A DNA stretch of 62,984 nucleotides, the filler included, from Lenisia limosa (lineage: Eukaryota > Protista > Breviatea): the NCBI GenBank assembly GCA_001655205.1. It is 7 parts of 7 records of this genome, joined end to end, with 100 filler letters (N's around TTAATTAATTAA, not from the genome) between each part and the next. Parts side by side here need not be neighbours in the genome. Positions count along the whole stretch, not along the records: positions 1 to 23,304 come from LPNZ01006543.1; 6 more parts are not named here. One strand, 5' to 3'. Of the stretch, positions 2,473 through 23,304 are shown one piece after another; position 1 is the stretch's first letter; every line of letters begins with the position of its first letter. The notes below the pieces were generated by a model, which made no database searches, was not told the origin of the DNA, and saw nothing but the letters and a program-made list of their open reading frames with translations. The translations under genes were made by a program, and so were the position numbers.

Positions 2473-5400
2473 ATGTTAAAGTACTTTTTCTTCTTCCTTC
2501 TTATTACTCTTTGCCTAGCGGAGCATAGGCCGATAATATGTCTTAATGGGGGAGTGAGAACCTCAGAAAATAAGTGCAACTGCATCGATGGCTGGAAGGG
2601 AGTGGCCTGTGATGGTTTGTGGTTTCTCTTTTCGGTAACACTGGAATCGGCCTTCAAATTTCACAATTTACAGTCTGTGAGTCTTCTGACACCTGTCACA
2701 CGACCCTTGGTGACGCTTTCCAATGTCATAATGAGGTCCCGATCATCTCCTCCAAGATGTTCTCCTGTCATAGTACAAGTATGAGACTATTTTAGATAGA
2801 AATACGAGAAATATCAATGACTTTCCTGTTTCCTCCACTTACCCCTCCAGCCGACTGGATCCTTGAGAAAGTCGGCGATGCTGGTATCCACTGGGGTTGC
2901 CAGTTCCCTGACTTCGACTATTCCAAGGGCTCTGGTACCTGCAATATGGATTGTAAGGGAGTAGAATCATTTCACTTTATCCGGGTTTAATCTGATACTT
3001 CCAGTAGATTCGTTTATTTTTCTCTCTAACTCATGTTTAGTTTTTTTTTTTTTTGGTTATTTTTGTCTTTTGTTCATTATTGTATTGTTAATAGAGATGA
3101 GGCTGTCATGGCCAACTATCCCCTTGAATTTATTTTCATTTACTGCTAACTGCTACTTCTACGGCCTTCTTTACCTGTTAGTTTGGCGACATCCAGATGG
3201 AGGGGAACAAGCATTCAACTGTAACATGACCGGTTGTACCCAAAAGGAGGATGGTAAGGTTAAGGCTTCTTCCTTTTGTGGGGTATTTATAGTCTTTTAC
3301 ACGTAATAATTAGCCATTTTTTATTTTGATTATTTCGATAGCTATTCAAATGCAAGTCCAAGTTGAGTTGTAACGGCTGTTTTGAAAATATTAAAATTGA
3401 CAATTCACTTCTATCACCATGTTTCCATCTGTTTCACCACAACAGGTGACGGTATTGACATTCATTGTAACGATGCACATTGCCACTGTTATAACTGTGA
3501 TTTCGCCGTGGCCATTCTCATTGATGCCTTGGAAGGTATGTGGTATTATTTACCAGACATTTTCCAGCATTTCTCAAAAAAAAACAGCATTGAAACAGTG
3601 AAAAATTGCTTCTTATTTCAGATTCTGTCTTAATTCGACACATATGCTTTCCGATATTGTAACTTTATCACCAAAATTATGTCATTACCTCGACATATTA
3701 CATCTTTAGGTGAATGCGGTATTCTTTGTAACGGAGAAAACACCTGTCGCTTCCGTCGTAAGAGGGAGCATTCATGTTAATAGGTTTTAAAAGTATAGTC
3801 ATTAAAGGTCTGAGTTACACTTCAAATAGTATTAGACCGCCAGTTTGCAACTAAATAGTACCATTCTAACCTTCTGATACCTTTATTACCCAGACCCCTA
3901 CATTGCTGAAGTTGTTCTTGAGTGTGTATCTGGTGAATGTGTGGACCGTTTACCTTTAAAACCGGTTAGTATTCTTGGAATAATGCTTCACTGTTTCTTC
4001 AACAGCCAGAGTCCCATCTCAATTTTTGCTAAATTCGGATCTACATTATTTTGGTGACACCTAGTTTACCTCATTTTGTTACTCTCTAGTCTATATACGT
4101 CGGTCCAGACTACGTTTGGGGACATATCACGCGACAGGTACGTATGGATTGGCTGTGTCTGAAATTACATTCATTGTATAAACTTTTCTGTTTTGTTCCT
4201 ATCTCCTGATGCAATTTAGGTTTTCTATGCTATCTGTAGTGTTGTTGGAGTTATGCTTCTGGGAATGATGGTAGGCAAGGAAAGAGAGCTTTGTTTGGAA
4301 AATGGACAACTGAAATTTAAAAATCGAATCCCAACTAGGTGTCCTAATTGTTTCTTATTTAGCTCTGGTGTTTTGATCATCGGCGTAAATGGCGGAGAAG
4401 TGACAGGGCTCGTGAAATCAGATTAATTCAAGCAGTATGATGGGACTCCCATTGTACATCACAGATTTACATGGTATAATCAAGGCACTTTCACTTTATT
4501 AGAGCCATAATTAACCAAAGATATTTATTGTTTTAACAGCCTAGACTGACTTGTCTGAGTATACTGTTCTGACCCAGTACGTTGGTCTGACTGCATGGCA
4601 TATCGGACGCTCCGTCAACACTAGCACTGGTGTTCTCAAAGTTGGAGGGATTGGCTGACTTGGTCTGCACGAGTCAATGTTACTGGTGCTTGGCATTGAT
4701 CATCAATTGCACTCGTATATCAATTTCTACAATGACTTCCGTTTCAATGTTGTAGTTGCCGGAAATAGATGATTGTAATTGTATAAACCATAATATTGAG
4801 AGTTAATTGACAACTTAAGTGTAGTTACATGTTTGGACTCCACATTTCACCGCTTCCCCCACTAGGTTCTTTCAGATACGTCTTTCCACATTCCAACTGG
4901 TGCTCTCTGTGCTATTCTTGGCGAATCGGGGTTGGTGTGGATTTCAAAATCGAAATAGTCTGGGCATAATTTTCATTGAGGAGTTGTACGTGCATCAGGT
5001 AAAAGCAATCTTTTTTTGCCCAATGTCACAATTTAGTTCAGGCAAAACCACTGCGCTTGACATCCTTGCTGGTAGAATGAAGGGTGACCCTGGTAAGCCG
5101 TAGTATTCACGCATTGCTATTACCAATACATGAAGTACTATACTATATGCATATGTTGATCATACTTTTTTCAACGCACTCACGTAAGTTGTCAAAGTAT
5201 CCTATCAAGTGATATTCGATAAAGTTGCCGTTGACCACAGCTAACAAAAGTGTCTATTTTTACCCAAAAAGGGACAATTGGCAAGGTGCTCTTTAATGGA
5301 CGTGAACCAACCGCTGCTCAGATCGCGAGAAACTCAAGGTAGTCATTTCTGTCTTAATCAGCCTTGGGAAAAAACTAACAGAACACCGCCATACTTGCAT

Positions 5401-8400
5401 TTTGTTTTGTACCTTTGCTTCTTGTATTATACCTCATTCAATCCAATGGAGGAGAATAATCAACCCCAAGTCTTATTCTTCAGTTACATTGAGCAAGATG
5501 ATTCATTCATCGCTACGCTGACATGTCGCGAGACAGTTCGCTCCTACGCACTCCTCAGCCTCCCGTCATCGATGCCGCATCACGTAAAGAACATGCTAGC
5601 GGACCAGGCCCTTGATGACCTCGGTTTAACACACATCGCGTCTTCGCGTGTGGGCGATACGCTAAAACGAGGCATTTCCACAGGCGAACGACGGCGTCTC
5701 AGTATTGCGTGTAGAGTGGGGGGTTGGGTAAATATTGCAGTTTATTAGGGGTGGGACTAAAACTGGCATGATTATATCGTATGGAGCAGTATTAGCTGTA
5801 GAGTTGGAGGAACTAATTGGAAGGGGGTACATTTTTTGAATGTATGTGTTGGGGGGGGGGGGGGCTTTAGGCCTGNNNNNNNNNNNNNNNNNNNNNNNNN
5901 NNNNNNNNNNNNNNNNNNNNNNNNNNNNNNNNNNNNNNNNNNNNNNNNNNNNNNNNNNNNNNNNNCTTTGGCCTTAATTGTATTTAGATTGTTTCAGCCA
6001 AGCCAGTGATTTTCCTTGATGAACCAAGTGGGTGGGATAGGACTTCAATACAAATGAATAATATCAATCATGAACGTAAAGGTCTTTCAAGCACTATGGG
6101 TTATGAGTATTATGATATCATAAAACACTAAAATGGTAACATTCCATATATTATATACTACATAACAAGCTAAAGTAGTGTGCATTTTGTTCTCTTCCAC
6201 ACTAACGCCCTTTAGCAAGTGGACTTGATGCTCATAATGCCCGGGCGGTCATGGACGGACTTCAGACAATGGCCCGAAGAGGACACACCGTTGTAGCATC
6301 CCTCCATCAACCAAGGTAAGAGATACATATCGATATAGATTTGGCTCGACTGTTGGATCAATATCCAATCTTAACCAGCAATTGTCTAGTTGACTGGGTT
6401 ATATCGTAGTTTCCTCTATCCACGATCAGAGTTCATCTTTTGTTTTCATATCTTCAGAACGGAGGTAGTGTCAATGTTTGACCGCATTATCCTGCTCTCC
6501 CATGGCCGTGCCGTTTTTGCAGGTACCGCTGACCATGCTCAAGACTTCTTTGCAAGTTGGTTGTGGCCCGTGATGGGAGGGGGAGGGGTGGTCTAATGAA
6601 TATACAATCAGAGCCACCACGAGAATGTCTGCAATCACATCTGACATTATCAGGTATTGGGCACCCGGTACCGGAGCTTTGTAACCCTGCTGACCATTAC
6701 ATTGATATCCTCACTGGTATGTTTTTGGTTACCTTATTGTGAGCTCAACTGGTATGTTTTTGGTTACCTTATTACTATGATGATAGGTTTTTACCTTGTT
6801 ATTTGTTATCCTCACTGCTAATTGATAACTTAATGATGGTATTGTTTGTGGAATGTATTGAGGCAGAAAGAGCTTCACAATGGCCACCTATGAATATCCA
6901 ATAAAGCATAAGAAGCTCCAACTCAGAGTTGATTCGGGGTTTTGTTTTAAGTGTTTTACTCCTCAGCCGGCTCGGCTGAGGACCGTTCGGCTTACATTGC
7001 GCAATTCGACTCATCGGAAGTCGGCCGAATAGCCCGGGCCGAGGCCTCTCAATGGGCTACTGCGGGAGGTGTTGATCGGGTTGGGGGGAGGGGGCGTATT
7101 CTTTTATCAAAACGTAAGAAAATTCGTTTCAGTTATATAAGATGATCTCTCTTATATATCATATGATCCTATCAAATTATATGGTTGATAAGGCAGCCTC
7201 TTATATATAATATGATCCTGTCACATTCTTTGGTTGATAATGCAGTCCCTCCCATCCGACTATCCGTCATCATGGTCCACTCAGCTCAAGGTCCTCACCG
7301 TTCGGTCTTGGAAGGATCTGGTGAAGGGGGGTATTGTAAAGTGGCATTGCGAGGCTTTTCAAAAAAATGCATTGAATAATTATACTATTAGGCAATCCCA
7401 CAAATGACAGTAACCTTAGATTCCGTTTCAGTGTACTTTGTTCATCATGACCCCTACAAACTGATCCCTTATGGCCTTACAACTCAGGTCCGAAACCCTT
7501 TCATGCTTCGTGCCCATTGGATTGGTGCTCTAATCCTTGGCCTTTCTATCGGTTAAGTGGGATCGTGGAGAGGGGATAGCTTTCTTTTGAATTATTTTGT
7601 AATTGCACCTGTTTGAGTAGATATTATTGCTCGTATTTCACATGTTCTAATCTCAATTCCATTCACCCCCTCCCAGGCCTAATCTTCTGGAACGCCACCT
7701 CCACCAACGCTGGGGTCCAGAACCGACTGGGGGTTCTCTTTTTCCTCTGTGCAGTCATCGGTTTCGGCAACTTGTCGGCTGTGGACGTCTTCCTAAACCA
7801 ACGCGTCCTTCTGACTCGCGAGCGGGCGGCTGGTCTTTATAGGTAATGGGGGGGGGGGCAATATGGTTTGTTAATTAAGGTTGAGCAGTTGAGATCATGA
7901 GTCTTGTTTTTACATTACTAGGCCATTCACGCACTTCTTTGCTCAGTTCTTCTGCGATTTTATCCCGTTACGGATCATCCCTCCTTCCATCATAGCCATC
8001 TGCATCTACAAACTTGTTGGCCTTTATCCTTCAACTGGTGGGTAACATTAAGGTTACGACATAATAGCGCTCCATGAAATGTCTACTTTTTAATGAGGTC
8101 GTGTATCAGACAATGTTGAAGAGCATAGAACAATCAAGCACTAGTATTATAATAACCCAAGACCATTGCTCATTTCACTCGTTCAGCCCGATTGATGACG
8201 TTCCTCACTGTTACCAATTTGGTCTCAGCAGCAACAAGGTACGAACATCCAGAGCTACATCGTTCAATACTTCGGTATAATTTATGATTATGAAGCCGTA
8301 GTAGACGTGTGTGGTTATTCTCAGGAAGGCCTGAATGTATTCAACTGGTATTTGTGTTACCCCCCCCCACCCCCNNNNNNNNNNNNNNNNNNNNNNNNNN

Positions 8401-11400
8401 NNNNNNNNNNNNNNNNNNNNNNNNNNNNNNNNNNNNNNNNNNNNNNNNNNNNNNTGCCTTTCGAGATCCAGTGGACTTGGCAACCTTGTAGCTGGTGAGG
8501 GCTTGGTGCTGCATGCGATAAGGGGATTTCTCTGACTTACCAAATATGAGCCTTATTTCTTTTGGGAATACGCATCGCAGTTGAATGGTGATAGAAAGAG
8601 TCAGAAAAAGCGACGATAATTCATATGCATCTAGTTATTCTTCTTCTCTTCAATTTGCTGTTCTGCGGATTTCTCCTCAACAAGATGGAGATGGCCCCTG
8701 GACTCAGCAGTTTGCGCCACTTCTCATTCTTTAATTACGCCTATGAGGTATGTAGGTAGTGTTGAAACTACATTATTCAATATATCTTTTTTATTATATA
8801 TGTATAGTCAAAGCTCCGGACATCATTCAAAATTCCCGGACACATCAAAACTCCCGGACAGCTTGAGTTTTTCATACAAAATCACCATAAACCACCTAGA
8901 AACCCTATTTCCCTTCTGTTTTTGAAAGTAATCTCAATCTTAATCAAATAATGAAACACCAATTTAACATATTATCGGGTCAAAACCAAATTAAGTCCCT
9001 AAGCTCTCTATTAACGGTCCAAAAACGGTCAAAAACAAGCAAAAACCGTTATAAAAGGCCACATTCAAGAAATAAATGGCAACTATCCGGGAAAGTTTAC
9101 CCCTGTTGACAGTGCTATTTTTAGCATTTTTTCCTCAAAATTCACCATTGCATAGCCAAAGCAAATGGGAACCCGGAACCAATTACTCCGAGGGGTACAA
9201 ATTTTTGTTTNNNNNNNNNNNNNNNNNNNNNNNNNNNNNNNNNNNNNNNNNNNNNNNNNNNNNNNNNNNNNNNNNNNNNNNNNNNNNNNNNNNNNNNNNN
9301 NNNNNNNNNNNNNNNNNNNNNNNNNNNNNNNNNNNNNNNNNNNNNNNNNNNNNNNNNNNNNNNNNNNNNNNNNNNNNNNNNNNNNNNNNNNCAAGGACAA
9401 AATCATCAAAGTCATTATTCTCTTTGTTCAAGTATATTGAGTTGATAACCATGAATAATGAAGCATCATAAAGGCGCAATAAGTCTGAAAAAATGCTTAT
9501 AAATGTTGTTGGCAGAATGTGTAGACGTTCCTGACGTTTTAGGCCCTGGTAGCCAATGAGTTCAAGGGACAGTGGGTGTGGTGGAAGTGGCAGGGAGACA
9601 TTCTTCATCTTGACGGAGAAGAAATGATAAAGGTGAGGGAGGGGAGCTTTTTCGTACAAGCTATATCTGTTTTTGTGACTGAAGATTGATATGAAGCATA
9701 CAGTTAACTGGGTAGATATTTGGGCTAGACCCCCATGCGGTACGGCATGATCAATACGTCCTATGTGGCATCGTGGTGATCTACTTCCTGCTTGCCTACG
9801 CAATGGTCTACTTCATCACGGCACCTCGGTTTGGCAAGAAGGGGCTGATGAACAAGATCTATTGATACGAAAGTAATAAATATATTGTTGAGATGCAGAT
9901 AAGGAATTTTTTATTAATATTTGAGGACCTGACGGTTTTAGATACACGCTCCGATTTTTCCACCGTAAATCCCGGCTTTTTGCCTCGAATGTGTCTTCTG
10001 TAGCCGCCCCCGTTCGTCCCATACCAAGGTCCTACGCTGCAGTTTTGAGTGAAGTATGCTGGGGTGCTGAGCATTGGTTCAAAACATGAATTTCTTGATA
10101 TTTCTTCGATTTAATTTTGAGGTTTTCTCTGTCAGGGATTGCCTATCAGGGCCACTTTAGGGAAACAGGATATTCTTTGCTGTAACACTATTCTATGTAC
10201 ATGCCTTTGCTCTCTTGAAAGTTGCCTTTATTAAGCTGATCTTGTAGCTGGGTGAGACTATCTATCAATACAGTCCTCATATCTACATCATACAATTATC
10301 ATTCAACTTATTGCTGTTCTCGGGTGGTGGCAGCTCTCCGCTTGATACCTCTCACCCTCGTAGAATTCGCCCCCCCACGCAGGCATCCCGAGCGACACAG
10401 CTGCTATGATCCCGGGGCTGAACCCCGACACCCAGGTTTGCTGAAGGTCATGATTTTAGGCATCCAACTATTCTAACAATGACGACTCCTTTCGCATTAC
10501 AATGGAATTTCTTTGAAAAAATATCGATATATTCAGTCTTTTTTGGGACCATAGGGAAGCCCTAGTTTGTTTATTGTCCTTATTTACCCCCACCTCCCAT
10601 CTTATGGTCGCTTTTGGCGAAGAGATGCTCTTTGTGCGATACATGCCACGGCCGATTTCACCACATAGAGACGCTTAGCTGCCTCAGTCATGCCCTTTGA
10701 AGAGGGTCGCGAGAGTCAAAGGGCCCTCCCGGGAGACCAGCATGTTCTGAGCGATGTTAATTGGGGCGATGTCAGGACTGCTATGGTGGAAGTCATGGCC
10801 CGCAATGTGTCCGTTACAGTCGATAAGGGGTGAGCATGGGACTACAACAATCACCAAATTTTTCTGTTGTTTCTCAGAAATACTTTTTATTTTTCAAAGA
10901 AAACCTGTGTTTTAACACCCCACCCTAACCAGGGATCGAGATCTGAAGGTGCTGCACCCGCTTTCTCTCATTATTCGGTCCGGCAAACTCACGGCCATAA
11001 TTGGGGAATCCGGGGCTGGTAAAACAACCCTGCTTGATGTTTTGGCTGGTGGGGGGGTACTGGGGAAGATGGTCTAGTATATGATAAATGATAGCATATG
11101 ATATGTGCAAGAAATTTTACGTAAACAATTCACTTGCTCGGACGTCGTCGTAACAGGTATTTAGGCCGAGCCAAGTCGGACAAGGGTGGAGCAGTGTTCT
11201 TCAACTCCGTTCGCGCATCATTCAACAACAGCAATGTCAAACACATCATGGGGTATGTATGGGACATGTAACATCAACGCAACTCAATATGTATTGTATA
11301 ATACATAATACTGAAGGCAAACCCTGACAATCAATTACCGTTAATGATCAGAATGTTGGTCACATTTTGACTATCATTGTAATAATTTTGCAACGTTTCA

Positions 11401-14400
11401 CACCACAGCTACGTTGAGTCCGAAGACAGTCAGATTGCAGTGATGACTGTGACAGAATCCCTGCAGTTTGCTGCGAGGCTGCTCCTACCTAAGTCAATTT
11501 CAAAGGAGGTGGGTTGGATAAATAGCTTTTTCTGGGTTAAATGTTAAACCACGCTTCTGTTGATAATCAGGTGTTGAAAAATCCTATCATTATTGCCTGC
11601 TAATATGGAGGTGTGGAGGTTTCGACTGGTGTCCCCTCTGTGTGCTCTCTTTTTCTTTCATTTAGAAAATTTTCTTCATATTATCACATTTTACAACATA
11701 ATACTATTGATATTGATATGATGTATTAGGACCGGCAGCAGCGTGTAACAGAAGTCATTGCTGACCTCTCACTCACCCATGTCAAGGATCACAGAGTAGG
11801 CATTTTGTTGTTTTAATTGTATGATATACAGTGCAAGGGGTCCATATTTTGCTGTTTCTAATTTTATTGCATTCTACATATATATGTGCATACATACCCT
11901 TGCTCCCTCGAAACCATCTCAATCATGAATGGCTCTCCCTGACACTCTAGGTTGGAAATACCATGCACCGAGGAATCAGTGGAGGTAAGTATAACATAAA
12001 TTGAGCTATGAAAATAAAAAAATAAAAACAAATGATTATCTAGTATACATATTATAAATCCCTATACTCCTTCGTTTCACTGTGTAGGTGAGAGAAGGCG
12101 ACTCAGTATTGCTATTCAGGTCATTTCTGCTCCACCCGTCATATTCCTTGATGAACCAAGTGGGGGGGTTGTGAACATGATCTTTTTTCTCTACACCCCT
12201 TTTCTTCATATTCTCAAGATTCACTATAATCTTAAAAGTCTACTTTTATCAAACCTAAATGCACTTTCACAGCCGTGTTTTACTTACCCTTCTGTACTCA
12301 TGAAATATTATTCTTTGCATCACATTATGCTAACTCCTATAGCAAGTGGCTTGGACGCCCACAACGCGAGGACCGTAGTAGAAGGTCTGTACTACCTGGC
12401 CAATACTAAGGGGCATACAATTGCTGCAGTCTTGCACCAGCCGAGGTGAGTACTATAATTTGAAGTGTGAACTCCATTAATAGAAAATTACTCTTGGTAC
12501 GATGAACCTTAGCTTACATATCATCTGGGATTTGAAGTTCCTGGTACACTGCTTCCTTTTGTTGTTTCCTCACTCTTGTTTTTTTTACATTATAGCCAAT
12601 AAAGCTAATTTTATTTTATAATTTTACCCCCCCCCCCCNNNNNNNNNNNNNNNNNNNNNNNNNNNNNNNNNNNNNNNNNNNNNNNNNNNNNNNNNNNNNN
12701 NNNNNNNNNNNNNNNNNNNNNNNNNNNNNNNNNAGGGCGATTGGTCTACTCAGGCCCGTCGTCTGACGCAGTGGCTCATTTCGAGGCTCTTGGTGGGGGA
12801 GGAGAAGTTATCGTGTATATAATCATTGCAGATGCCCAGTTTAACGGATGTGATAGTCATATACTAGTATATATAAATATATACAGATGTATGTATTATA
12901 TCATATGTAATACTAGTAGACATTTAAACTCGTTTTGACTTCAAATTTTCCCCCTCTATTGATCCCACAGGATTCCCGTTCCCGTCCCACACCAACCCAG
13001 CCGACTTCTTAATGGACGTAACAATGTATGCAGTCATCTTACAATCAACCTGCTTTATTTCCACTTTGAAGAACAGAAGAGTTTTACTTTATTGTTATCC
13101 TCCTGGTTGTAGTTTCATTCACTTCCCAGGTCTTCTGACCTCCCCGATGATGAAGACTTCACCCCTGTCATCCCATCCATGCTTGCAGGTTTGTTGCATG
13201 GTAGCGATACGGTCGAAAATCTACTGTTTTGTCGCTTCGAAAAGATTTACATCTTCTGGGGAAGCTTCTAACAGATAACTCCTTTTTGTTCCACATTTCT
13301 TACATCCATGACCCCGTCTAGGTCCCATAAGTCCGCACACAGTTGCGACAGTTCGCTCGCCCCCGGTGGAAATCCCCACTACACCCACAATTATCCGAAG
13401 CCCTAATCACATCGTCGGTACCCCAGGTGCGTTCTATTCATTTCATTTGAACATAAAATATAAATTTACTGCCTGGCCATAGCTGTATTTGTAAACAAAC
13501 AGCATGAACACAGTTTAATTATGATGGCTCTAACTGCTGTGTTTTCGATTCCGACCGTTTCAAATTCTGATCTGTCAAAAAATACTCATTTTCTACAGGA
13601 GTCCCACCTGACTTCTCAATTGCACAAGAGGAGGTGCTTGGCCTACCGACTTCCCTGGACTCAGAGGAGGGATTCGGGTTCGAGTATGATGGCATTCACA
13701 TCAGTATTGTAAACATTATATTTCTGATACTTCTTTTATGTCATAAATGAGTTGGTCTAAGCTTTGCAGATCAACTGTATATGACGACGAAGGAAGCAGG
13801 TTAATTACTCCAGTCCGAATGTAGGGGTGATTGAATAGAAGCCAAATTGTGGTGGAGGTAATAAGAAAATTTGAGGCATGGGTGATGAACGCATTCAATA
13901 CCTTTAAATTGGCAATTCATCAAGCTCACTCCCTAGACCCTCGGCAGACCACCCGTTAGCGACTTTAGACACCCGGTCAAAGTGGCTCAATGAAATGTTC
14001 AACAAATCCAAATATGGCAACTGTTGGTGATTGTCTTTTTTTTATCCAAATCGTGCAGACGCTTAGTCAAACAATATAAAACTGCAAGAAAAAGTTTTCA
14101 TAACGCTCACTCCTTGATAATACTCCCCCAATCACCCACTAATCCCTACCCTATCTCATTCAGCCCTCTCCGATCGCGTGTCCCTGCTTTTACCAATTGG
14201 TGAGTCCATCAACGAAATGTCCCCCACGGTTCCTGTTGTCGGCCACCACAGCCTGCCGTACCCCCGTGCAAGGTACGTGGTAGTAAGAATGAAAGAAATT
14301 CTCACATTTACAGCTATGTTGAAATTTTTAAACAGAAAGTGTTATTTTGGTGGGATATGAGCCCTTTCTTCTTTGAAAACTTATTATTTAGTTCTCAAGA

Positions 14401-16748
14401 TGTTACTGCTGCTCCTGCTGATGTAAGGAGAGGGCACAGATCAAGGGGTTGTGTAGATAATCAGTTGTGGTGGACATTTTAAACTTATTGACTTCTCTAG
14501 ACTGCCGGCAGAGGTATCCCATCAAAAACAAAACGATCCGGCTGGATAGTCCAGGTCAGAAGGAGTTCACGATTTTTTGTTTTTAAATGTTCATATTTTC
14601 CTTCCTTTTAAACCATCATTTGCAAAAATGTTGTCAACTGTTGTGGCGGAATTGTTTTGACAAACCAGCCATCCACCACCCACTCTTTTTGCCAATCTCT
14701 AGAACATATTATTGAAGTTGTATTAACGACAGTGCAGACGTACACTGTTATGAAACGCGCTGGAAGGCAATTCCTCAGAGATAGGTAGGTGCAGCTCACT
14801 TCCTTCAAAGTAGACAAGAATGCAGAAGACCCATTTTCTTCACTCTCCAGATCCCTCGTGATAGGCCACTATCTTTCTGCCATTGCATTTGGCGCCATTT
14901 TGGCCTGGTTCTTCTATGATCTCAAGCTTGACGAGAGCGGTCCGGGGGAGGGTGTGTGTCTGTGATCTTTTCCGGATTAGCATGGCTGTAACCCACTTTC
15001 GTTGCCAATTATTTGCCTCAAAATTGCCGTTCCGTTCAATGTTAGCACCCACATTCAATTTTCTCCAAGACTTTACAATAAACTAATGAATCAAATTTAG
15101 TGGAACATACAGAATCTTTCAGTATGTCCTTTCACTCCATTCTGACCTTCAACTAACATTTCTCAGGACTGCAGAACCGTGTGGGACTGTTCTTCTTCCT
15201 CTCTGCTCTGTTTTGCCTCTCCACGCTGTCAGTCCTCGATATCTTTGTTGTTGACCGCCCAATATTTAGACGCGAGAGAGCTGCTGTTGGCGGGTACAAC
15301 TTACAACTTATATCAATAAACTATTCTGAAATTCCTGTTTTGTTGGAGAAATTGTATATAATTATCTCTCACCATATTGTACATGACACAAGATCAAATG
15401 TTGAATAATGACTCTTTTATTGGAACGTTTTAGGGGTTTTACTCATCATCATCGTATTTCTGCGGACGTGCTATTGTGGACCTAATTTTCCTGCGTGTCC
15501 TCCCACCTATCATTACGGGCGCTATTCTCTACTACGCTGTCGGCTTGAACGTCTCAGGTCTGCATGACTCATCTTGGTTAATTGATCATGTTTTAGTGGT
15601 ATTCATAAGTGCTTTATGTTTTGTTTTTTTTCATATTATCTTTTCAGAATTAAAGATGTACTTCAGGTTACTTAAAACCATGTATCTCTTTCTCTTCGTT
15701 TTCTTTAGTGTGTTATTCTCATCATATATTTTTGCCTCTTGCAGAGTGGCACAGAGTCGGCATCTTCTTCCTAGTTCTCACAGCGACTTCGGTGATAGCC
15801 ACTGGCCTCTGTCTTGGTGGGGGGGGGGTAATCCTAATCAATGTCTATTCATGGGACTTTTTCCCCATCACACCCATCAATCAAGCACCAATCACCCTAC
15901 CCTGTCAGGCTTGAGTGCGTTTGTTCCCTCCGTCGGGGTGGGGTCGATCCTAGCTTCCTTCATTATTTTGGTCCTCCTGCTACTTTGCGGCTTTGTTTTG
16001 GTGGGTTGGCTCAAATTCATACATCATGTCTAGATTAACTATATTATAATCCAATATCTCGTAAGCGTAATGATGTGGACGGCTTCGGGCAGATACAACC
16101 TTCTTTTCTATTTCTCATTGCTAATATATATGTGTGTATGAAGGCACCACTCATTCACATCCATAGAACAAGGATGAAGCACCTGCTCTAGTCAAGTTTG
16201 TCAGTAAAGTCACGCCATTCTCCTACAGCTATGAAGGTGGGAGCTTGGCTTCAGCTTACATATGTAATACCCCCCTCCCTCACTGACAAACTGAATGATG
16301 GGTTTTATTGATTGTGTGTATGGGGAAGGGAACCGACTGTTTTACCATCTAATCAGCAAAACGCCTTTGTGTTGCGGCAGCTTTGGTGAGGTTTTTATAT
16401 TTATTTAAACACCATACCTTCATTCACGCCTTACAGCCATGCTTGTCAACGAGGTGTCCAACCTGAACCTCACGTGGGTGTATCACGGCGGCTCGTGGCC
16501 TCTTCCTCCTCGAGATGCTCTGGCCATGTTTGGCTTCGACGTCGATAGATTATGGGACGATTTGAAGGTATGTGCAAGATTCTCGGAATTCCTTTCGCAG
16601 CTTTTCAAACTTGATTTGACCACCCCACAAAAAGGGCTAAAAACAAACTCCTCTAACCTCCCTTTAGGTTCTTCCTGCCTTTGTGATGGCGTTCTTTGTT
16701 TTTGCTCTAATAATTTTGATTACTACCACGCGCTACCACCGTCGGTAG
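2473..16748 (+). CDS. ABCG-family transporter: signal peptide, EGF-like Cys-rich ADP1-type ectodomain, TM, NBD1, TMD1, NBD2, TMD2 (about 55-60 exons; could be two adjacent genes split at about 9865)
   Basis: N-terminus [16 protein letters not shown] then [17 protein letters not shown] and ADP1-like FWRH..AFNC and [11 protein letters not shown]1: GESGSGKTT (about 4920-5050), ISTGE, IFLDEP, LHQPR. TMD1: [31 protein letters not shown]2: GESGAGKTT (about 11000-11020), ISGGE, IFLDEP, LHQPR. TMD2: [19 protein letters not shown]; ends TTRYHRR* at 16746-16748. Confidence 0.9.
16037..16123 (+). repeat. Dispersed intronic repeat, 'UUCG' family (core GTGATGGTGTGGACGGCTTCGGCCAGATACAACC)
   Basis: Matches 44625-44715 (+) over about 85 bp; cores also at 27705-27770 (+), 23195-23240 (-), 33310-33362 (-), 49228-49262 (-), 62778-62850 (-). 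Confidence 0.85.
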
Positions 16749-16950: not shown

Positions 16951-19900
16951 CTACCAGACGTCAAGTCCATAGCGGCCGGTTCTCTGCATCTTTGCCAGGG
17001 CCTTTTCGGCTACCTCCTCCTCCACACCACCATGGTTGACCTGCAAGAGTTATACCAGGGTACCTACTCTTATGTTTATCATCACATGATATTACAGTAG
17101 TATGTACTTTTTTGCAAGCGAAATTGAGCAAGAAATAAAGGGGAAAAAAAAAAAACCAAATAATGGAGTTGAGAGAAAAGTTATATTGGACAAAAAGGGT
17201 GTGTTACTTTTTGAGGTAAATCAATTCACTAAATAACAGACCAAAGGACCCACTTGGAATTTAACAAGCATCTTGTGGACATTTTTGGCCATGTGCTCAG
17301 CATCACTACCAGAGTAAAAGGCTGAACTCAACAATAGACGAAACAATCTGAGCCCAATATTACTCCCACAGGACTCACCCGCAGATGTAGACATGGCCCT
17401 TCTCAAGGAAAATCAGGCGGTACAGCTCCTCTGACATTGACGACATTAAATCTGTTACGTAGAGCTTCTTCTCCTTAAAATGGTCACGGGATTCGTTGTC
17501 ATTATTCTTGGAAAAATAGGGGGGGGGGGGGAATNNNNNNNNNNNNNNNNNNNNNNNNNNNNNNNNNNNNNNNNNNNNNNNNNNNNNNNNNNNNNNNNNN
17601 NNNNNNNNNNNNNNNNNNNNNNNNNNNNNNNNNNNCACCAGAAACCATGCCCACAGATTCCCTGGAGAAAGCGGTGTGAAGGGCCACAAGGCCAGATTCA
17701 GCCCATTTGTTGAGACGGTCGCCATGAAGAAACTCCGTGCGATAGCGGTTTCCTGGAGGTGGGGGTCAATAATTGTACATAATATGAGGAGAGAGACTTG
17801 GTCCAAATACCTCCCAGCAATTTCAAAAAAAAATGTCAACTGAGGACCAGTTGATACAGAATAAATCAGAACTAAGCTTCCTACCAGTGAAGAGATGCAT
17901 AGGACCGACATCTTGGCCTGCGCTTTTGGCTGGAGGGATAAATCACAAAATTTGTCATGAAAACAAACGAAGTATATGTTTGGTGCTTAGAATATTCCAT
18001 CAACAGCCTAACAGCCCCGTCCATACAGCCTGTGCCACCTCTAAGAGACTGCGTACATCTATCATATCACATTCATCAAAACATTGAATATTGAAATATA
18101 AGTTTATCCAATTCAAGACAGAGTAAAATAAAGGAAAACCATGGTAACCACTCCACAGCATACCGACAGAGCGGTTTTCGAGGAAGCCAATGAAGGGAGC
18201 AATGCCACTGCCGGGACCGATCATGACCACGGGAACTGTGGTCTTGGCGGGGAGGCGGAATTGCGATCTAATGATCAGATACTGGCATACGAGTGATGGA
18301 TTGCTTGAAATGATATCTCAAAGGACATCGTTAGTAAGTGTGCTGATAAAGCAACAACAAAAATTACCTTCGGATAAAATGCAAAATTGAATGTAGCCTG
18401 CTAACAAAGTTGCAAACTTTTTTATAGCAGGGGCAACACAAACCTGCGAATGAACATTGGGACAATGTCTCCTTGTTTGAGCCCAGACAGCCTAAGTAGT
18501 TAGGCTTTAGTTTTTTGGCAATTATTAATGGTATTCTACAGATCAAGATCAATAGAATATATTTATCGTTATTTCACTTGTCTGTATAACGCAGCACCAG
18601 TAGAATAACAAAGTAATCAGTTAATAAACTACATTCACATTCCTTGACCCACACACCATCCCGAGCAAAGACCGGTGACATTCTTGTTGCCCTTCATCCA
18701 TGATGCAACACCAACACTGATCACCACGCGTCCTTCTTTGTACTGAATCGGTAACACCAAAGTAGCAGCAAGAAATGGAATCTCAAAGTTCCCGAAAAAG
18801 CGAAATCTCTCAATAAATCTTTTGTATATCCTTCTTTTTCCATCGAGAAAGAAACATTGGAAAGAATTAAATATTTGAATATACAATATGACAAAATTTT
18901 ATCTTGGACGAGGGAAAAGCGAATAATAGCATGTTCAAAGGACAATTAGGTATAATATGTCATATCATATCATAAATAAATCTGATAATAGGACCCACCT
19001 TGAGAGATGAAGAAATGGAATAGAATCGCGCTTGGAGAGGAGGGCAAACTTCAAGGAAATGCCCGAATGGAATCTACGAGAGTAACAGGTTAATCAGAGT
19101 CTCTTCTAGTACATGTGGAAATGAGGAAATAGATGGTTCATCTGTAGAAATAACAAGGGATCCATCTGCGAAGCTGTATTAACAGTAAATGTACACAAAA
19201 TCTATTTCATTCAAGGTAAACAATGATAGAAATAGCAACGAAAAGTCCCAGCAAACCTTGACAGAAGCAAACTTGGTCATGATATCAGAGACAGACAGCA
19301 TTTTATCCCCAATTTCAGCATCAAACTTGACCTACAAAAACAAATTAATAAAGAATTTAGAATGGAAAACACATGGGATACAATCCACCTTCCTCAAGGG
19401 AATGCATACGTTGGGAGAAGTCAGGAGGAGGGAAGCAGGTCTGTCACCAACCTTGGACTCTGCAGAGGTCGACGCCAAGGCCTGGAGTTCCTCGTTTGCC
19501 TCAGTGCCTTCAGTGTAGACAGCGAGGGCCATCAGAAGGTCCTGAGCAGTGATGAAATACCAAAATTTTTAAAGTCAAAAACTATAATGTTATCACCGTA
19601 TCGTTCAATTGTATAGTTGTGCCACTACACTAACGCCTCATCCCAATAATAAAGTTTCATTTTATGAAATACCGTTTTGCTTTTCAAAATAGGATCGCCT
19701 ACCTTGGTTGGAGTAGCCATTAGATCAACGTTGTGTGTAAGCAGCGTCCGCGCAGTGGCCGCGTTGAAGAGCTTCTTGTCTTGGGAGGGTGACGATGAAA
19801 CAAAGGAAATTCCGATGAAGAATTTTCGCGTAAAGGTGCTAATCATAAACTGATGGTGAAAAATGGGGCATGGGTGCAAAAAAAAACTCATTTGGAGAAG

Positions 19901-22900
19901 TAGTTGAGACAGCACCAACTTTTGGTTTCCGGATCTGTGGATTCAAGTGTGACACAGGGGTTATCCAGAATGTCGAACCTGATGGGTGAAAAACCAATTA
20001 TGATGTTAAGAACATGAGAAAAAAATTCAAGGTGGAGCAAAGAAAAACAACGGACATTATTCGGATCGTACAGATCACATTAAATTGCCGAGCAACAGAG
20101 CTGTTGAATATTATGGACCACGATTCCGTGCTGCCCATCCAACCGAGTCATCATAGCCTCGACAACTTCCTTCGGGTTTGATGCGTAAACGCCAACATGG
20201 TCACCTGCTACATACCTGAGACCGTGAGCCCCTATATTCTCCATTTTTTGTGCTATTATCTTTGTCTTTTGTACCTCCCTTTATCTGTAAAAAGAAATAT
20301 TTTTGCTAATACGGGTATCTAGGGAGCAGGTGAACAATTTTCTGATGTTGTTTTAAAATGTATTGCATCATGGACGCGAGGTACTTCTTAACAGAATGAA
20401 TCCTGCATCTGATAATCAACTCCTCGCCAATACATCCCTCGCACTTGGCACGTCCGCCCGAAGTGTCCAACGCAACTTCCACGTATTTGCGAGCGTTGCC
20501 ATCCTGCACAGTTAAATTAGGCGCCATAACAAATGGTATTCAAATGAGACGGACCTCCCCTCTCCTGATAGTTCAGGGATGCTTAATCGTGTTAACTTAT
20601 GTTTGGAAGATTGCACAGCCCTCAATATTCCGACCTGATGAAGTGGAGAAACAGAAATGACAGGAGCATAGAAGGGTCTGTCAGGCTTCACCATTCTGAA
20701 GTATGAGAGATGATCCATTCTGGATTTTTGTGATGGGACAAACTGTGAATAGAAAACAAAATTAACGCCTGATGAACTCAAAAGAAAACCTTGAACATTG
20801 AACATTAGTTTCCACTTTTCAATTGTAAAACATACGAATGATATGATCTATGTATCTTCTATTGTCCGCAAACGACATCATCTCCTTGCTTACGCCTTGG
20901 CATCGGTGGGAGGCGGGTACACAGGAGCCTCGTCGGTTGGGGCAAGGGTGCAGATGTACTGGGGCTTTCCAAAGGCGGTGCGCGCCGCAGCATCGTAGTC
21001 AACCTAAGACAGGGGGTAANNNNNNNNNNNNNNNNNNNNNNNNNNNNNNNNNNNNNNNNNNNNNNNNNNNNNNNNNNNNNNNNNNNNNNNNNNNNNNNNN
21101 NNNNNNNNNNNNNNNNNNNNNNNNNATAAACTGTAAGAGCATCCATTATGTATGACCCTATTTGGTGGCCGATTCAAAAAGTTAAGACAGGACCTCTCAG
21201 ACCCACCATCAGTGTATATCCCTCCCCCACATTAGCCGCTGCACACGCTGCCGGCCACAATCCAGCCCTCCACGTCATAAAGTCCTCGTCAAGACTGGTG
21301 GAAGCGTCACCAAGGCCGAGGTCGTAGAACTGCGGAGTCATGGGTGTTTTATGTGCGGGGTAGTTGCGATAGGTGGCGTACAATGCGGATAGTGTATCGA
21401 AGTATGTAGATGCAGAGGTTTATTAAAGTGTGAATGAGAAACGTGGGCGGGAAATGAGACTCAAAAAANNNNNNNNNNNNNNNNNNNNNNNNNNNNNNNN
21501 NNNNNNNNNNNNNNNNNNNNNNNNNNNNNNNNNNNNNNNNNNNNNNNNNNNNNNNNNNNNNNNNNNNNNNNNNNNNNNNNNNNNNNNNNNNNNNNNNNNN
21601 NNNNNNNNNNNNNNNNNNNNNNNNNNNNNNNNNNNNNNNNNNNNNNNNNNNNNNNNNNNNNNNNNNTGTTTCCTTAGCCTGTCTCGTACCAACCCTGTAT
21701 CCTTATTATGGCTCTCCAACCAACCCTGCAGCCGCCATTGGCTTCCAATCCGGCATCGAATCTTCGAGCACTTCTGTTGAAACGTTCGAAGCGGCGAGAC
21801 CCACAGCCGAATACAGCAAACCTAAGGGTATCATACACTTTGAAGATGACAAATTGTTAGATTATATAAATATTCCTAATAATGTCGACAAACATATGAT
21901 ATATTATTGGAATGACAGAGCCTTCATGTATGTACCCCTCAGTACCTGCTCACATCTAAAAGCCCAATCATCTTTAACCACTCACTTGCTTGATGAGCAG
22001 TCAAAGCCTGCAAGAATCTTCTTCAGAGACTCATCAGCATCATCACTGGCTTCTCCTGGGGGGGGGGGGTAAAATTGAAAAATTTATGAAACAAAAAAAA
22101 ACCAAATCAACTCTGCTGNNNNNNNNNNNNNNNNNNNNNNNNNNNNNNNNNNNNNNNNNNNNNNNNNNNNNNNNNNNNNNNNNNNNNNNNNNNNNNNNNN
22201 NNNNNNNNNNNNNNNNNNNNNNNNNNNNNNNNNAAATTTCTTGAGGTAGTTAATGTTGAAAATTACTAGGTAAATATGATATATGGAGTGAAATAAGAAT
22301 ATTATCTTTGAAAAGGAGCATCGTAGAGATAGTTAAAAAATCGCCTGTCGGAGTAGCAATCTCACCGTCTCCGAACGTTGAAACTACAAAGATGGCAGTG
22401 GCTGAGCCTGTCATGATTTCAGTCTAAATGAAGGTAAAAACATGGTTTCATTTGAATGGTGACCCACATTAAGTGCCTTATCCCCTCACCACATCAACAG
22501 TGTCAAGGCGCGCAGCTTTCGACGCGAACCCCAAACGTCTTCCTTCACTGGCCAAACGGAGGGCAAATCTGGACGGTTATGGAAGCAAAGATTTTGGGAT
22601 TGATAAGCAAAAACTATCCAATGTTGGAGGATTTGTTTGCGTATATGATGACATGCTACAACCCACCTTTCACTGTTTCCGCTCTGAGAACCGAAAAGGA
22701 CACGTAAGACAGGCTGAATAATAAAGCAATGCCAATCAGAAAGAATGGCAGAAGGTATGAAGGAAAGCCTTTGTTCAATCATTACGTTTGAAATACGTTG
22801 ACCCGTATCCACTTGGGATATGATCAGCTGACAGACTCCAGAGCCGATACGGATGAACGAAGATAAAAAAGCCTATTAGATTCATTGCACGAGTACGTCG

Positions 22901-23046
22901 TATCATTGCGTAGTTCACACGTGCGAAAATGACCCAAAAGCAATATTGTATACATGTACAATAATTACAATTCCAAACCTTGTCACTGGTTTCCTCGGCC
23001 ACAATAGAGCTTTCACCCTCCTGTTGTTCGGACGAACTATGACGGT
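16951..23046 (-). CDS. Diflavin (FMN/FAD/NADPH) oxidoreductase of the cytochrome P450 reductase family; 5' end incomplete
   Basis: Exons encode [13 protein letters not shown] (about 22680-22720), [90 protein letters not shown], ending GRYGLDVW* (stop 16951-16953). Confidence 0.92.
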
Positions 23047-23304
23047 TACTTATTTATCAATTCTGTTCGTTTAAAAGAGCCGCATTTCTTGTTAAATTAT
23101 CGATAAATAATAATTTTTTTCAGGAATATCAAGGCACTGAGGAAGGCTTCTTGCTGAACACATTTGTCCGTGCTGAGAAAAGAGAAACCAAACAAAAGTT
23201 GCATATTGCCGAAGCCGCCCACACCATCACATTTGAGTATCGATCTGCCTCAGAAATTGTGGAATCCTCTGTAAATTCTTTGATCCAAAAAAAAACGAAA
23301 TAAT

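Follow-up and report, generated by a model that had tools for sequence, protein, structure and literature searches.

Exon chain and domains of the locus

We analysed a 62,984-nucleotide (nt) stretch of DNA from the breviate Lenisia limosa (GenBank assembly GCA_001655205.1), hereafter the window, of which positions 1 to 23,304 come from contig LPNZ01006543.1. The plus strand of this contig carries a co-directional exon chain from an ATG at 2473 to a TAG at 16746-16748. In order, it encodes a signal peptide, an Adp1-type Cys-rich ectodomain, one transmembrane (TM) helix, and two ABCG-type ATP-binding cassette (ABC) modules, each consisting of a nucleotide-binding domain (NBD) and a transmembrane domain (TMD): NBD1, TMD1, NBD2 and TMD2. 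The presumed route to full-size ABC transporters is the duplication and fusion of half-transporters, but intermediates are rarely seen. A preliminary description of the window had proposed that this locus encodes such a full-size transporter, with an ectodomain otherwise known from half-size proteins.

The genome assembly containing the locus comprises 49 Mb in 11,727 contigs. We modelled the gene by building a GT-AG splice chain by hand over 2473-8238 and then training a small gene finder on those exons; in one validation test, the finder recovered 5/5 RNA-confirmed exons, all withheld from training. Splice sites were scored with a position weight matrix (PWM) against decoy sites. RNA evidence consists of contigs of one polyA-RNA run from the same study, aligned to 9392-12638, and these confirm six introns in module 2 and two in module 1. 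Pfam, structure and database searches were performed exon by exon, and the spliced protein, once joined, served in the alignment, the trees and the motif tables. The hand model of 2473-8238 has 25 exons, only GT-AG introns and a single open frame of 734 amino acids (aa), and GC content differs between exons (0.50) and introns (0.36). A fused product of the whole chain would have approximately 1,700 residues and approximately 50 exons, in a model that is partly provisional.

Pfam matches on the plus strand (ABC_tran twice, ABC2_membrane twice) and the splice model bear out the proposed signal peptide, ectodomain, TM helix and co-directional NBD-TMD-NBD-TMD chain. The ABCG-type order, in which the NBD lies N-terminal to its own TMD (ABC_tran, then ABC2_membrane), holds in both modules. 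In the splice model, the ectodomain spans approximately 210 aa, with 22 Cys ahead of a TM helix beginning at residue 227, and the Walker A motif of NBD1 lies at residue 318; the ectodomain is Cys-rich, as first described, and smaller than the 250 aa then estimated. The Pfam EGF_2 match in exon 1 is weak (E 0.0018, under the cut-off). No second ectodomain is present between the modules, as had been proposed. The introns separating the TM anchor from NBD1 are 92-225 nt long, and therefore no gene boundary fits there.

The nearest solved structures in the PDB are ABCG2, ABCG25 and ABCG5, with ABCG2 matching NBD1 best (E 8e-12), and PDR pumps gave weak matches confined to the NBD; a PDB search with the last TMD1 exon alone returned no match. 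An exhaustive search with the NBD1 exon retrieved mostly two-NBD ABCGs. By taxon, the best hits to the locus are suggestive of an early-diverging fungus. The closest relative found among 1.84 billion representatives is P0014, an 891-aa open reading frame (ORF) on a 3,090-nt Logan contig of run SRR22387828. Feature coordinates are collected in Table 1.

Table 1. Features of the exon chain, with the evidence for each; (gap) marks an exon whose 5' part lies in an assembly gap.
Feature	Position	Strand	Evidence
Exon 1: start codon, signal peptide, first EGF-like Cys motif	2473..2614	+	hydrophobic N-terminus, Cys pattern, splice model
Remaining ectodomain, 7 exons	2674-2778, 2851-2952, 3182-3253, 3446-3535, 3710-3757, 3894-3964, 4090-4137	+	GT-AG, open frame
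TM-anchor exon	4220-4270	+	hydrophobic stretch from residue 227
Basic juxtamembrane exon	4363-4434	+	RRKWRR-type positive patch after TM
NBD1 exons	4545-4640, 4866-4930, 5037-5092, 5272-5338, 5484-5715	+	Pfam ABC_tran, splice model, motif table, PDB matches
NBD1 exons, rest	5988-6027, 6216-6315, 6458-6555, 6654-6716	+	Pfam ABC_tran, splice model, motif table
Connecting exon and TMD1	6967-7079, 7246-7320, 7488-7551, 7677-7842, 7922-8037, 8187-8238	+	Pfam ABC2_membrane, tblastn collinear with P0014
TMD1, rest	(gap)-8494, 8635-8747, 9543-9632, 9716-9828 (TM6)	+	RNA joints 8747>9543, 9632>9716 (Pfam and tblastn as in the row above)
RNA-supported intron with TGA 9863-9865, AATAAA 9875-9880	9829..9941	+	RNA contig
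Linker exon	9942..10053	+	acceptor RNA-supported; GC 0.52; proposed donor 10054 (GTATGC)
Proposed intron, or intergenic spacer if two genes	10054..10668	+	predicted from splice sites; solo 45-bp repeat at 10522-10567
Exon into NBD2, holds in-frame ATG 10690	10669..10829	+	open frame, acceptor PWM 7.5, codon score 0.5/codon
NBD2 exons	10933-11048, 11165-11252, 11409-11508, 11730-11795, 11951-11984	+	six introns across both NBD2 rows confirmed by RNA contigs, Pfam ABC_tran, motif table
NBD2 exons, rest	12088-12159, 12343-12446, (gap)-12792, 12971-13025	+	Pfam ABC_tran, motif table
Long low-complexity NBD2-TMD2 connector	13130..14784	+	gene-finder chain, frame-consistent; provisional, several small exons doubtful
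TMD2	14851..16748	+	Pfam ABC2_membrane, tblastn to P0014, exon chain
Last exon: TM6, RYHRR, TAG 16746-16748	16668-16748	+	

Family placement and ATP sites

The joined ectodomain matches the ectodomains of Adp1-like half-transporters, best that of P0140 from Dictyostelium firmibasis (phmmer E 3e-19, residues 31-254), followed by P0100, P0132, P0130 and P0135. We placed the ABC halves using quick trees with SH-aLRT support and a separate IQ-TREE run with ultrafast bootstrap (UFBoot), together with an approximately unbiased (AU) test of module sisterhood. In the tree without P0014, modules 1 and 2 are sisters (44% identity, support 99) and both fall within a clade of 13 Adp1-like half-transporters (support 92) from early-diverging fungi, Amoebozoa and Acrasis. 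When P0014 is included, its N half pairs with module 1 (SH-aLRT 95-97, UFBoot 96) and its C half, at low support, with module 2 (UFBoot 66), and the four halves form one clade (SH-aLRT 90-98, UFBoot 80) inside the Adp1 group. The wider Adp1 group is split from the YOL075c-like proteins with SH-aLRT 99-100. These separate placements of NBD1 and NBD2 had been suggested at the outset, and both modules come out as Adp1-type.

Because both modules sit in the Adp1 clade and the ectodomain is homologous to Adp1-like ectodomains, the locus is, judged from these sequences, an internally duplicated Adp1 and not an ectodomain grafted onto a PDR-type pump, in trees whose sequences did not include PDR pumps. 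The chimeric architecture put forward in the preliminary description is not upheld, since both modules group with Adp1, apart from the YOL075c-like full-size ABCGs.

The two NBDs have diverged in their ATP-binding motifs. NBD1 has canonical Walker A, Q-loop, Walker B and H-loop motifs and a degenerate signature (STGE), while NBD2 has canonical Walker A, signature, Walker B and H-loop motifs and a Ser in place of the Q-loop Gln (YVESED). In a table of 26 halves, STGE occurs only in module 1, with SGGE elsewhere, and the Q-loop Gln is missing only in module 2. Each ATP site of an ABC dimer is shared between the NBDs: one contributes Walker A, Walker B, Q-loop and H-loop, and its partner completes the site with its signature. 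Because the signature pairs with the opposite NBD, both defects fall in the NBD2-side composite site, and the NBD1-side site (NBD1 Walker A with NBD2 signature) is predicted to be fully consensus. This pattern, as read from the motifs, is that of an obligate asymmetric pair and argues that the two modules work together, fused or not.

One gene or two

In the unspliced genomic sequence, the frame past TM6 of module 1 stops at TGA 9863-9865, and an AATAAA follows at 9875-9880. A polyA-RNA contig that joins 9632 to 9716 follows the genome as far as 9828, where a GT comes next, and its remaining 11 letters match the window at a single place, 9942-9952, just after an AG. The contig thus splices 9828 to 9942, which places both the stop codon and the AATAAA within an intron of the only transcript seen. 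In this spliced form, 48 further codons are open before a TGA at 10087. A further splice from 10053 to 10669 would join the linker exon to the lead-in exon of NBD2. Donor 10054 (PWM 5.8) and acceptor 10669 (PWM 7.5) are the top-scoring sites of the linker region and are mutually in phase; 2% of decoys reach the score of either, and the donor score is within the range of true donors. At the far end of the lead-in exon, donor 10830 joins in phase to 10933.

The lengths on either side of this junction can be compared with those of relatives. In the 12 Adp1-like half-transporters with TM6 aligned to the protein end, 5-12 residues follow TM6 and close in a KE[KR]R-type motif, which the RYHRR end of module 2 resembles. 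Were the spliced mRNA to encode a half-size protein, that protein would have a 51-residue tail, which is without precedent among the 12 aligned half-transporters. If the modules are fused, TM6 and the next Walker A would be approximately 117 residues apart, and this distance is 79-171 residues in the seven two-module relatives with a sensible TM6 alignment. P0014 is itself fused: it is collinear with module 1 (41% identity over 477 columns) and then module 2, and has TMD1, a 70-aa linker and NBD2 in a single ORF with the same module order. It differs in that both its ends are cut, so that an ectodomain is not readable from it; its long exon is intronless where the L. limosa locus has many introns; its linker shares no sequence similarity with that of L. 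limosa; and it keeps canonical motifs throughout its NBDs. The L. limosa linker exon, queried as 9925-10086, matched no protein in a word search.

Because the RNA removes the stop codon, half-size relatives lack a long tail and the closest relative is fused, we favour the two-module reading: 2473-16748 on the plus strand is probably one gene of approximately 1,700 residues, encoding a full-size ABCG of the Adp1 family that arose by duplication. As to the full-size state proposed in the preliminary description, the stop after TMD1 is spliced out and a fused relative exists, but the transcript over 9953-10975 is unseen and the locus could comprise two genes; fusion is likely, short of proof.

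The two-gene alternative holds that a half-transporter, running from 2473 to TGA 10087 with a 51-residue tail, is followed by an ectodomain-less half from an ATG at 10690 to the TAG at 16748, and that their products heterodimerise as ABCG5 and ABCG8 do. We regard it as possible but distinctly less probable. The preliminary description found no convincing ATG before NBD2; this is incorrect, as ATG 10690 is in frame with the exon ending at 10829 and has a stop just upstream. That stop, TAG 10666-10668, is itself a good acceptor: its AG is the AG of acceptor 10669, in phase with donor 10054. Two genes would also fit a frame that closes at 10087 unless spliced again, but a 51-residue post-TM6 tail is found in 0/12 aligned complete Adp1-like proteins, and a 3' untranslated region would not be expected to contain an intron that takes out precisely the stop typical of the family and, after it, 48 open codons at exon-like GC. 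Approximately 600 nt separate the coding parts, leaving room for a compact promoter. The motif asymmetry would equally suit a heterodimer of two polypeptides. RNA contigs are absent over 9953-10975, which could mark a boundary between transcripts; this silence is uninformative because exon 10669-10829 lies there and would be in mRNA on either reading. The nearest relative is fused. A fused form like that of P0014 would be expected to descend from tandem duplicates, so that parsimony does not decide between one gene and two.

Several observations count against a single fused gene. The stop-skipping splice rests on one contig of depth 2 with 11 letters beyond the joint, no RNA contig covers 9953-10975, and the join to NBD2 is therefore unseen. 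Without another splice the frame closes at TGA 10087, and the in-frame ATG 10690, with TAG 10666-10668 eight codons upstream, fits an independent second gene. The proposed 615-nt intron is longer than 30/31 sized introns, although an RNA-confirmed intron of 795 nt (containing an assembly gap) shows that long introns occur here. Codon log-odds in the linker follow GC and do not separate the frames, and were not used as evidence. Two exons are interrupted by assembly gaps. In the trees, the AU test does not reject sisterhood of modules 1 and 2 (p 0.139), and even given N-to-N orthology, fusion could be confined to the P0014 lineage; whether it preceded the split from that lineage is not decided by parsimony alone.

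Two other linker models were examined. A three-exon chain via 10334-10435 is frame-consistent and was rejected for its poor acceptor, which at -7.9 scores below 98% of decoy AGs. The gene finder's five-exon chain is probably over-fitted to GC-rich pieces.

It is highly improbable that the two modules stand side by side only through misassembly at the 45-bp repeat at 10522-10567, or that the locus is a decaying pseudogene. The repeat occurs in several hundred genome copies, the contig is gap-rich, and in the DNA run the Logan contigs stop at the repeat, none spanning it. We assume, however, that Logan contigs break at any repeat so common, and the two DNA contigs share an overlap of 22 nt that is in register. 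Since the genome has few other ABCG-like loci, chance juxtaposition of two sister modules in the order and orientation of P0014 is very unlikely. As for decay, every exon that was built by hand or has RNA confirmation shows an open frame and canonical splice sites, and transcription and splicing are seen in both modules.

Under the single-gene reading, tandem duplication of the NBD-TMD unit of an Adp1-like half-transporter would have given two copies, which would then have been joined through intron 9829-9941, taking out the old stop codon. The product would consist of the signal peptide, EGF-like ectodomain, TM anchor, NBD1-TMD1, a cytosolic linker of approximately 90 residues, and NBD2-TMD2, and its halves would act as an intramolecular asymmetric pair with one consensus and one degenerate ATP site. 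Such a gene would capture the half-to-full-size transition with the old stop codon and polyA signal persisting in the intron that joins the halves and with the two NBDs already diverged. Fixing the ectodomain at one copy per transporter, this lineage may help ask what the ectodomain does. A role in sensing extracellular ligands, as put forward in the preliminary description, would be speculation that our results do not support.

A doubtful variant of the single-gene reading is that the gene makes two products: retention of intron 9829-9941 would give a half-size Adp1-like protein, and its removal the full-size asymmetric transporter. The internal start at ATG 10690 may add a third. If true, splicing would switch the ectodomain between a symmetric homodimer and an intramolecular heterodimer, and the half-to-full-size transition would be caught in progress at this locus, as a living intermediate.

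Known systems, own genome and surroundings

Adp1-related proteins have been described as carrying one NBD flanked on either side by a transmembrane domain, a chytrid having as many as six such proteins, and their function is unknown; full-size forms were reported for the YOL075C group only (Kovalchuk & Driessen 2010, PMC2848647). As in yeast Adp1p (YCR011C) and fungal ABC-G group VII, the first NBD-TMD of the L. limosa locus is preceded by a signal peptide, a Cys-rich EGF-like ectodomain and a TM anchor. Adp1 proteins are half-size, with a median of approximately 1,070 residues among those retrieved, and their ATP motifs are canonical, whereas here the post-TM6 stop is spliced out, a second NBD-TMD follows, and one composite site is degenerate. 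The YOL075C-like proteins (group VI) and PDR pumps (Pdr5, Cdr1) share the NBD-TMD-NBD-TMD order in one chain but have no ectodomain or N-terminal TM anchor, and the YOL075c-like N and C halves form a clade of their own with full support (SH-aLRT 99-100). PDR pumps have one degenerate ATP site. Human ABCG2 and ABCG5/ABCG8 are likewise reverse-topology ABCG halves, differing as separate polypeptides without an ectodomain; ABCG5/G8 is the model of an asymmetric heterodimer of two ABCG halves.

The preliminary description left room for the architecture to be already common in databases, and this is partly the case. Among approximately 400 collected proteins, 12 combine two NBDs with an N-terminal extension of 269-479 residues containing 13-31 Cys, none of them named. 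Their sources are a dinoflagellate transcriptome, Chrysoparadoxa, Mucochytrium and marine metagenomes; they include P0052 from Biecheleria cincta (1,675 aa), P0085 from Chrysoparadoxa australica and P0066/P0163 from Mucochytrium quahogii, the others being P0093, P0043, P0040/P0158, P0048, P0073/P0162 and P0026. These proteins resemble the L. limosa product in overall architecture and size, have 79-95 residues from TM6 to the next Walker A where TM6 was aligned, and place their ABC halves in the wider Adp1 superclade, except for the Mucochytrium pair, whose halves fall outside the clades examined. They differ in forming separate clades and in having ectodomains that barely align (best E 5e-4), and none is fungal. 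A Pfam search of the N-terminal regions of ten relatives found nothing.

In P0040, P0048, P0073/P0162 and P0097, two-NBD proteins from protists or metagenomes that mostly have a Cys-rich extension, each N half is the sister of the C half from its own protein; this tree topology suggests that internal duplication happened several times independently in the Adp1 superclade. Judged by the ABC halves of several unrelated protist proteins that share this layout, the Adp1 family seems to have made the half-to-full-size transition repeatedly. Our literature searches found no description of a two-module Adp1 relative; the layout is unreported for fungi, yet already lies unnoticed in public protist sequence sets. 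Where gene models and ABC inventories expect half-size Adp1-like proteins, such genes will come out split or truncated.

A word search with P0014 found nothing closer than the L. limosa locus, returning YOL075c-like proteins at 26-33% identity, with one exception at 41% over just 26% of the query. With the chytrid Adp1-like protein P0168, a word search gave 120 half-size relatives among the matches listed, and no fungal two-module form was among those relatives. Four long P0168 matches carry unrelated extra domains and look like merged gene models. Eleven Adp1-like transporters from Entomophthora, Basidiobolus, Umbelopsis, Mucor, Blastocladiella and others are named 'FAD-dependent urate hydroxylase' (P0132, P0165, P0293, P0296, P0297, P0301, P0302, P0321, P0341, P0350 and P0393), which looks like a spread misannotation.

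In the L. limosa assembly we found only a handful of ABCG-like loci (C2896, C7894, C11521, C3695 and C5330). The best own-genome match to a canonical chytrid Adp1-like protein is the Adp1-type locus itself, and a separate half-size Adp1 may be absent from the genome or unassembled. Around the gene, AT skew turns positive past approximately 17 kb and ORFs lie on the minus strand (1-2400 and 17000-23304); Pfam gave no match for ten minus-strand ORFs flanking the gene.

Two of the four assembly gaps lie within introns: gap 5876-5965 falls inside intron 5716-5987, whose neighbouring exons join in frame to give a stretch equal in length to its module 2 counterpart, and gap 9211-9391 falls inside intron 8748-9542, which an RNA contig bridges. 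Gap 8375-8454 conceals the 5' part of the TMD1 exon that resumes at 8455-8494, leaving approximately 10 codons unread by comparison with P0014 and the frame through the gap unreadable, and gap 12639-12733 conceals the 5' part of the NBD2 exon that resumes at 12735, with approximately 15 codons unread. Every gap in the locus adjoins a G or C homopolymer run (5847-5875, 8361-8374, 12622-12638), and the gaps are probably sequencing dropouts at such runs. Many introns start with GTGGGG or GTTGGG (for example at 5716, 7080, 7843, 11049 and 12160), and these 5' G-runs may bear on splicing in this organism. A 26-nt direct repeat (6712-6737 and 6747-6772) doubles the donor of exon 6654-6716, creating a second identical GTATGT donor 35 nt 3' of the first.

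The 45-bp repeat at 10522-10567 is dispersed, with a DNA word depth of approximately 9,295 vs approximately 33 in its flanks and 334 candidates in the own-genome search; a partial copy lies near 12553-12638. In several contigs, two copies lie in inverted orientation at a distance of approximately 50 bp and look like the termini of a very small miniature inverted-repeat transposable element.

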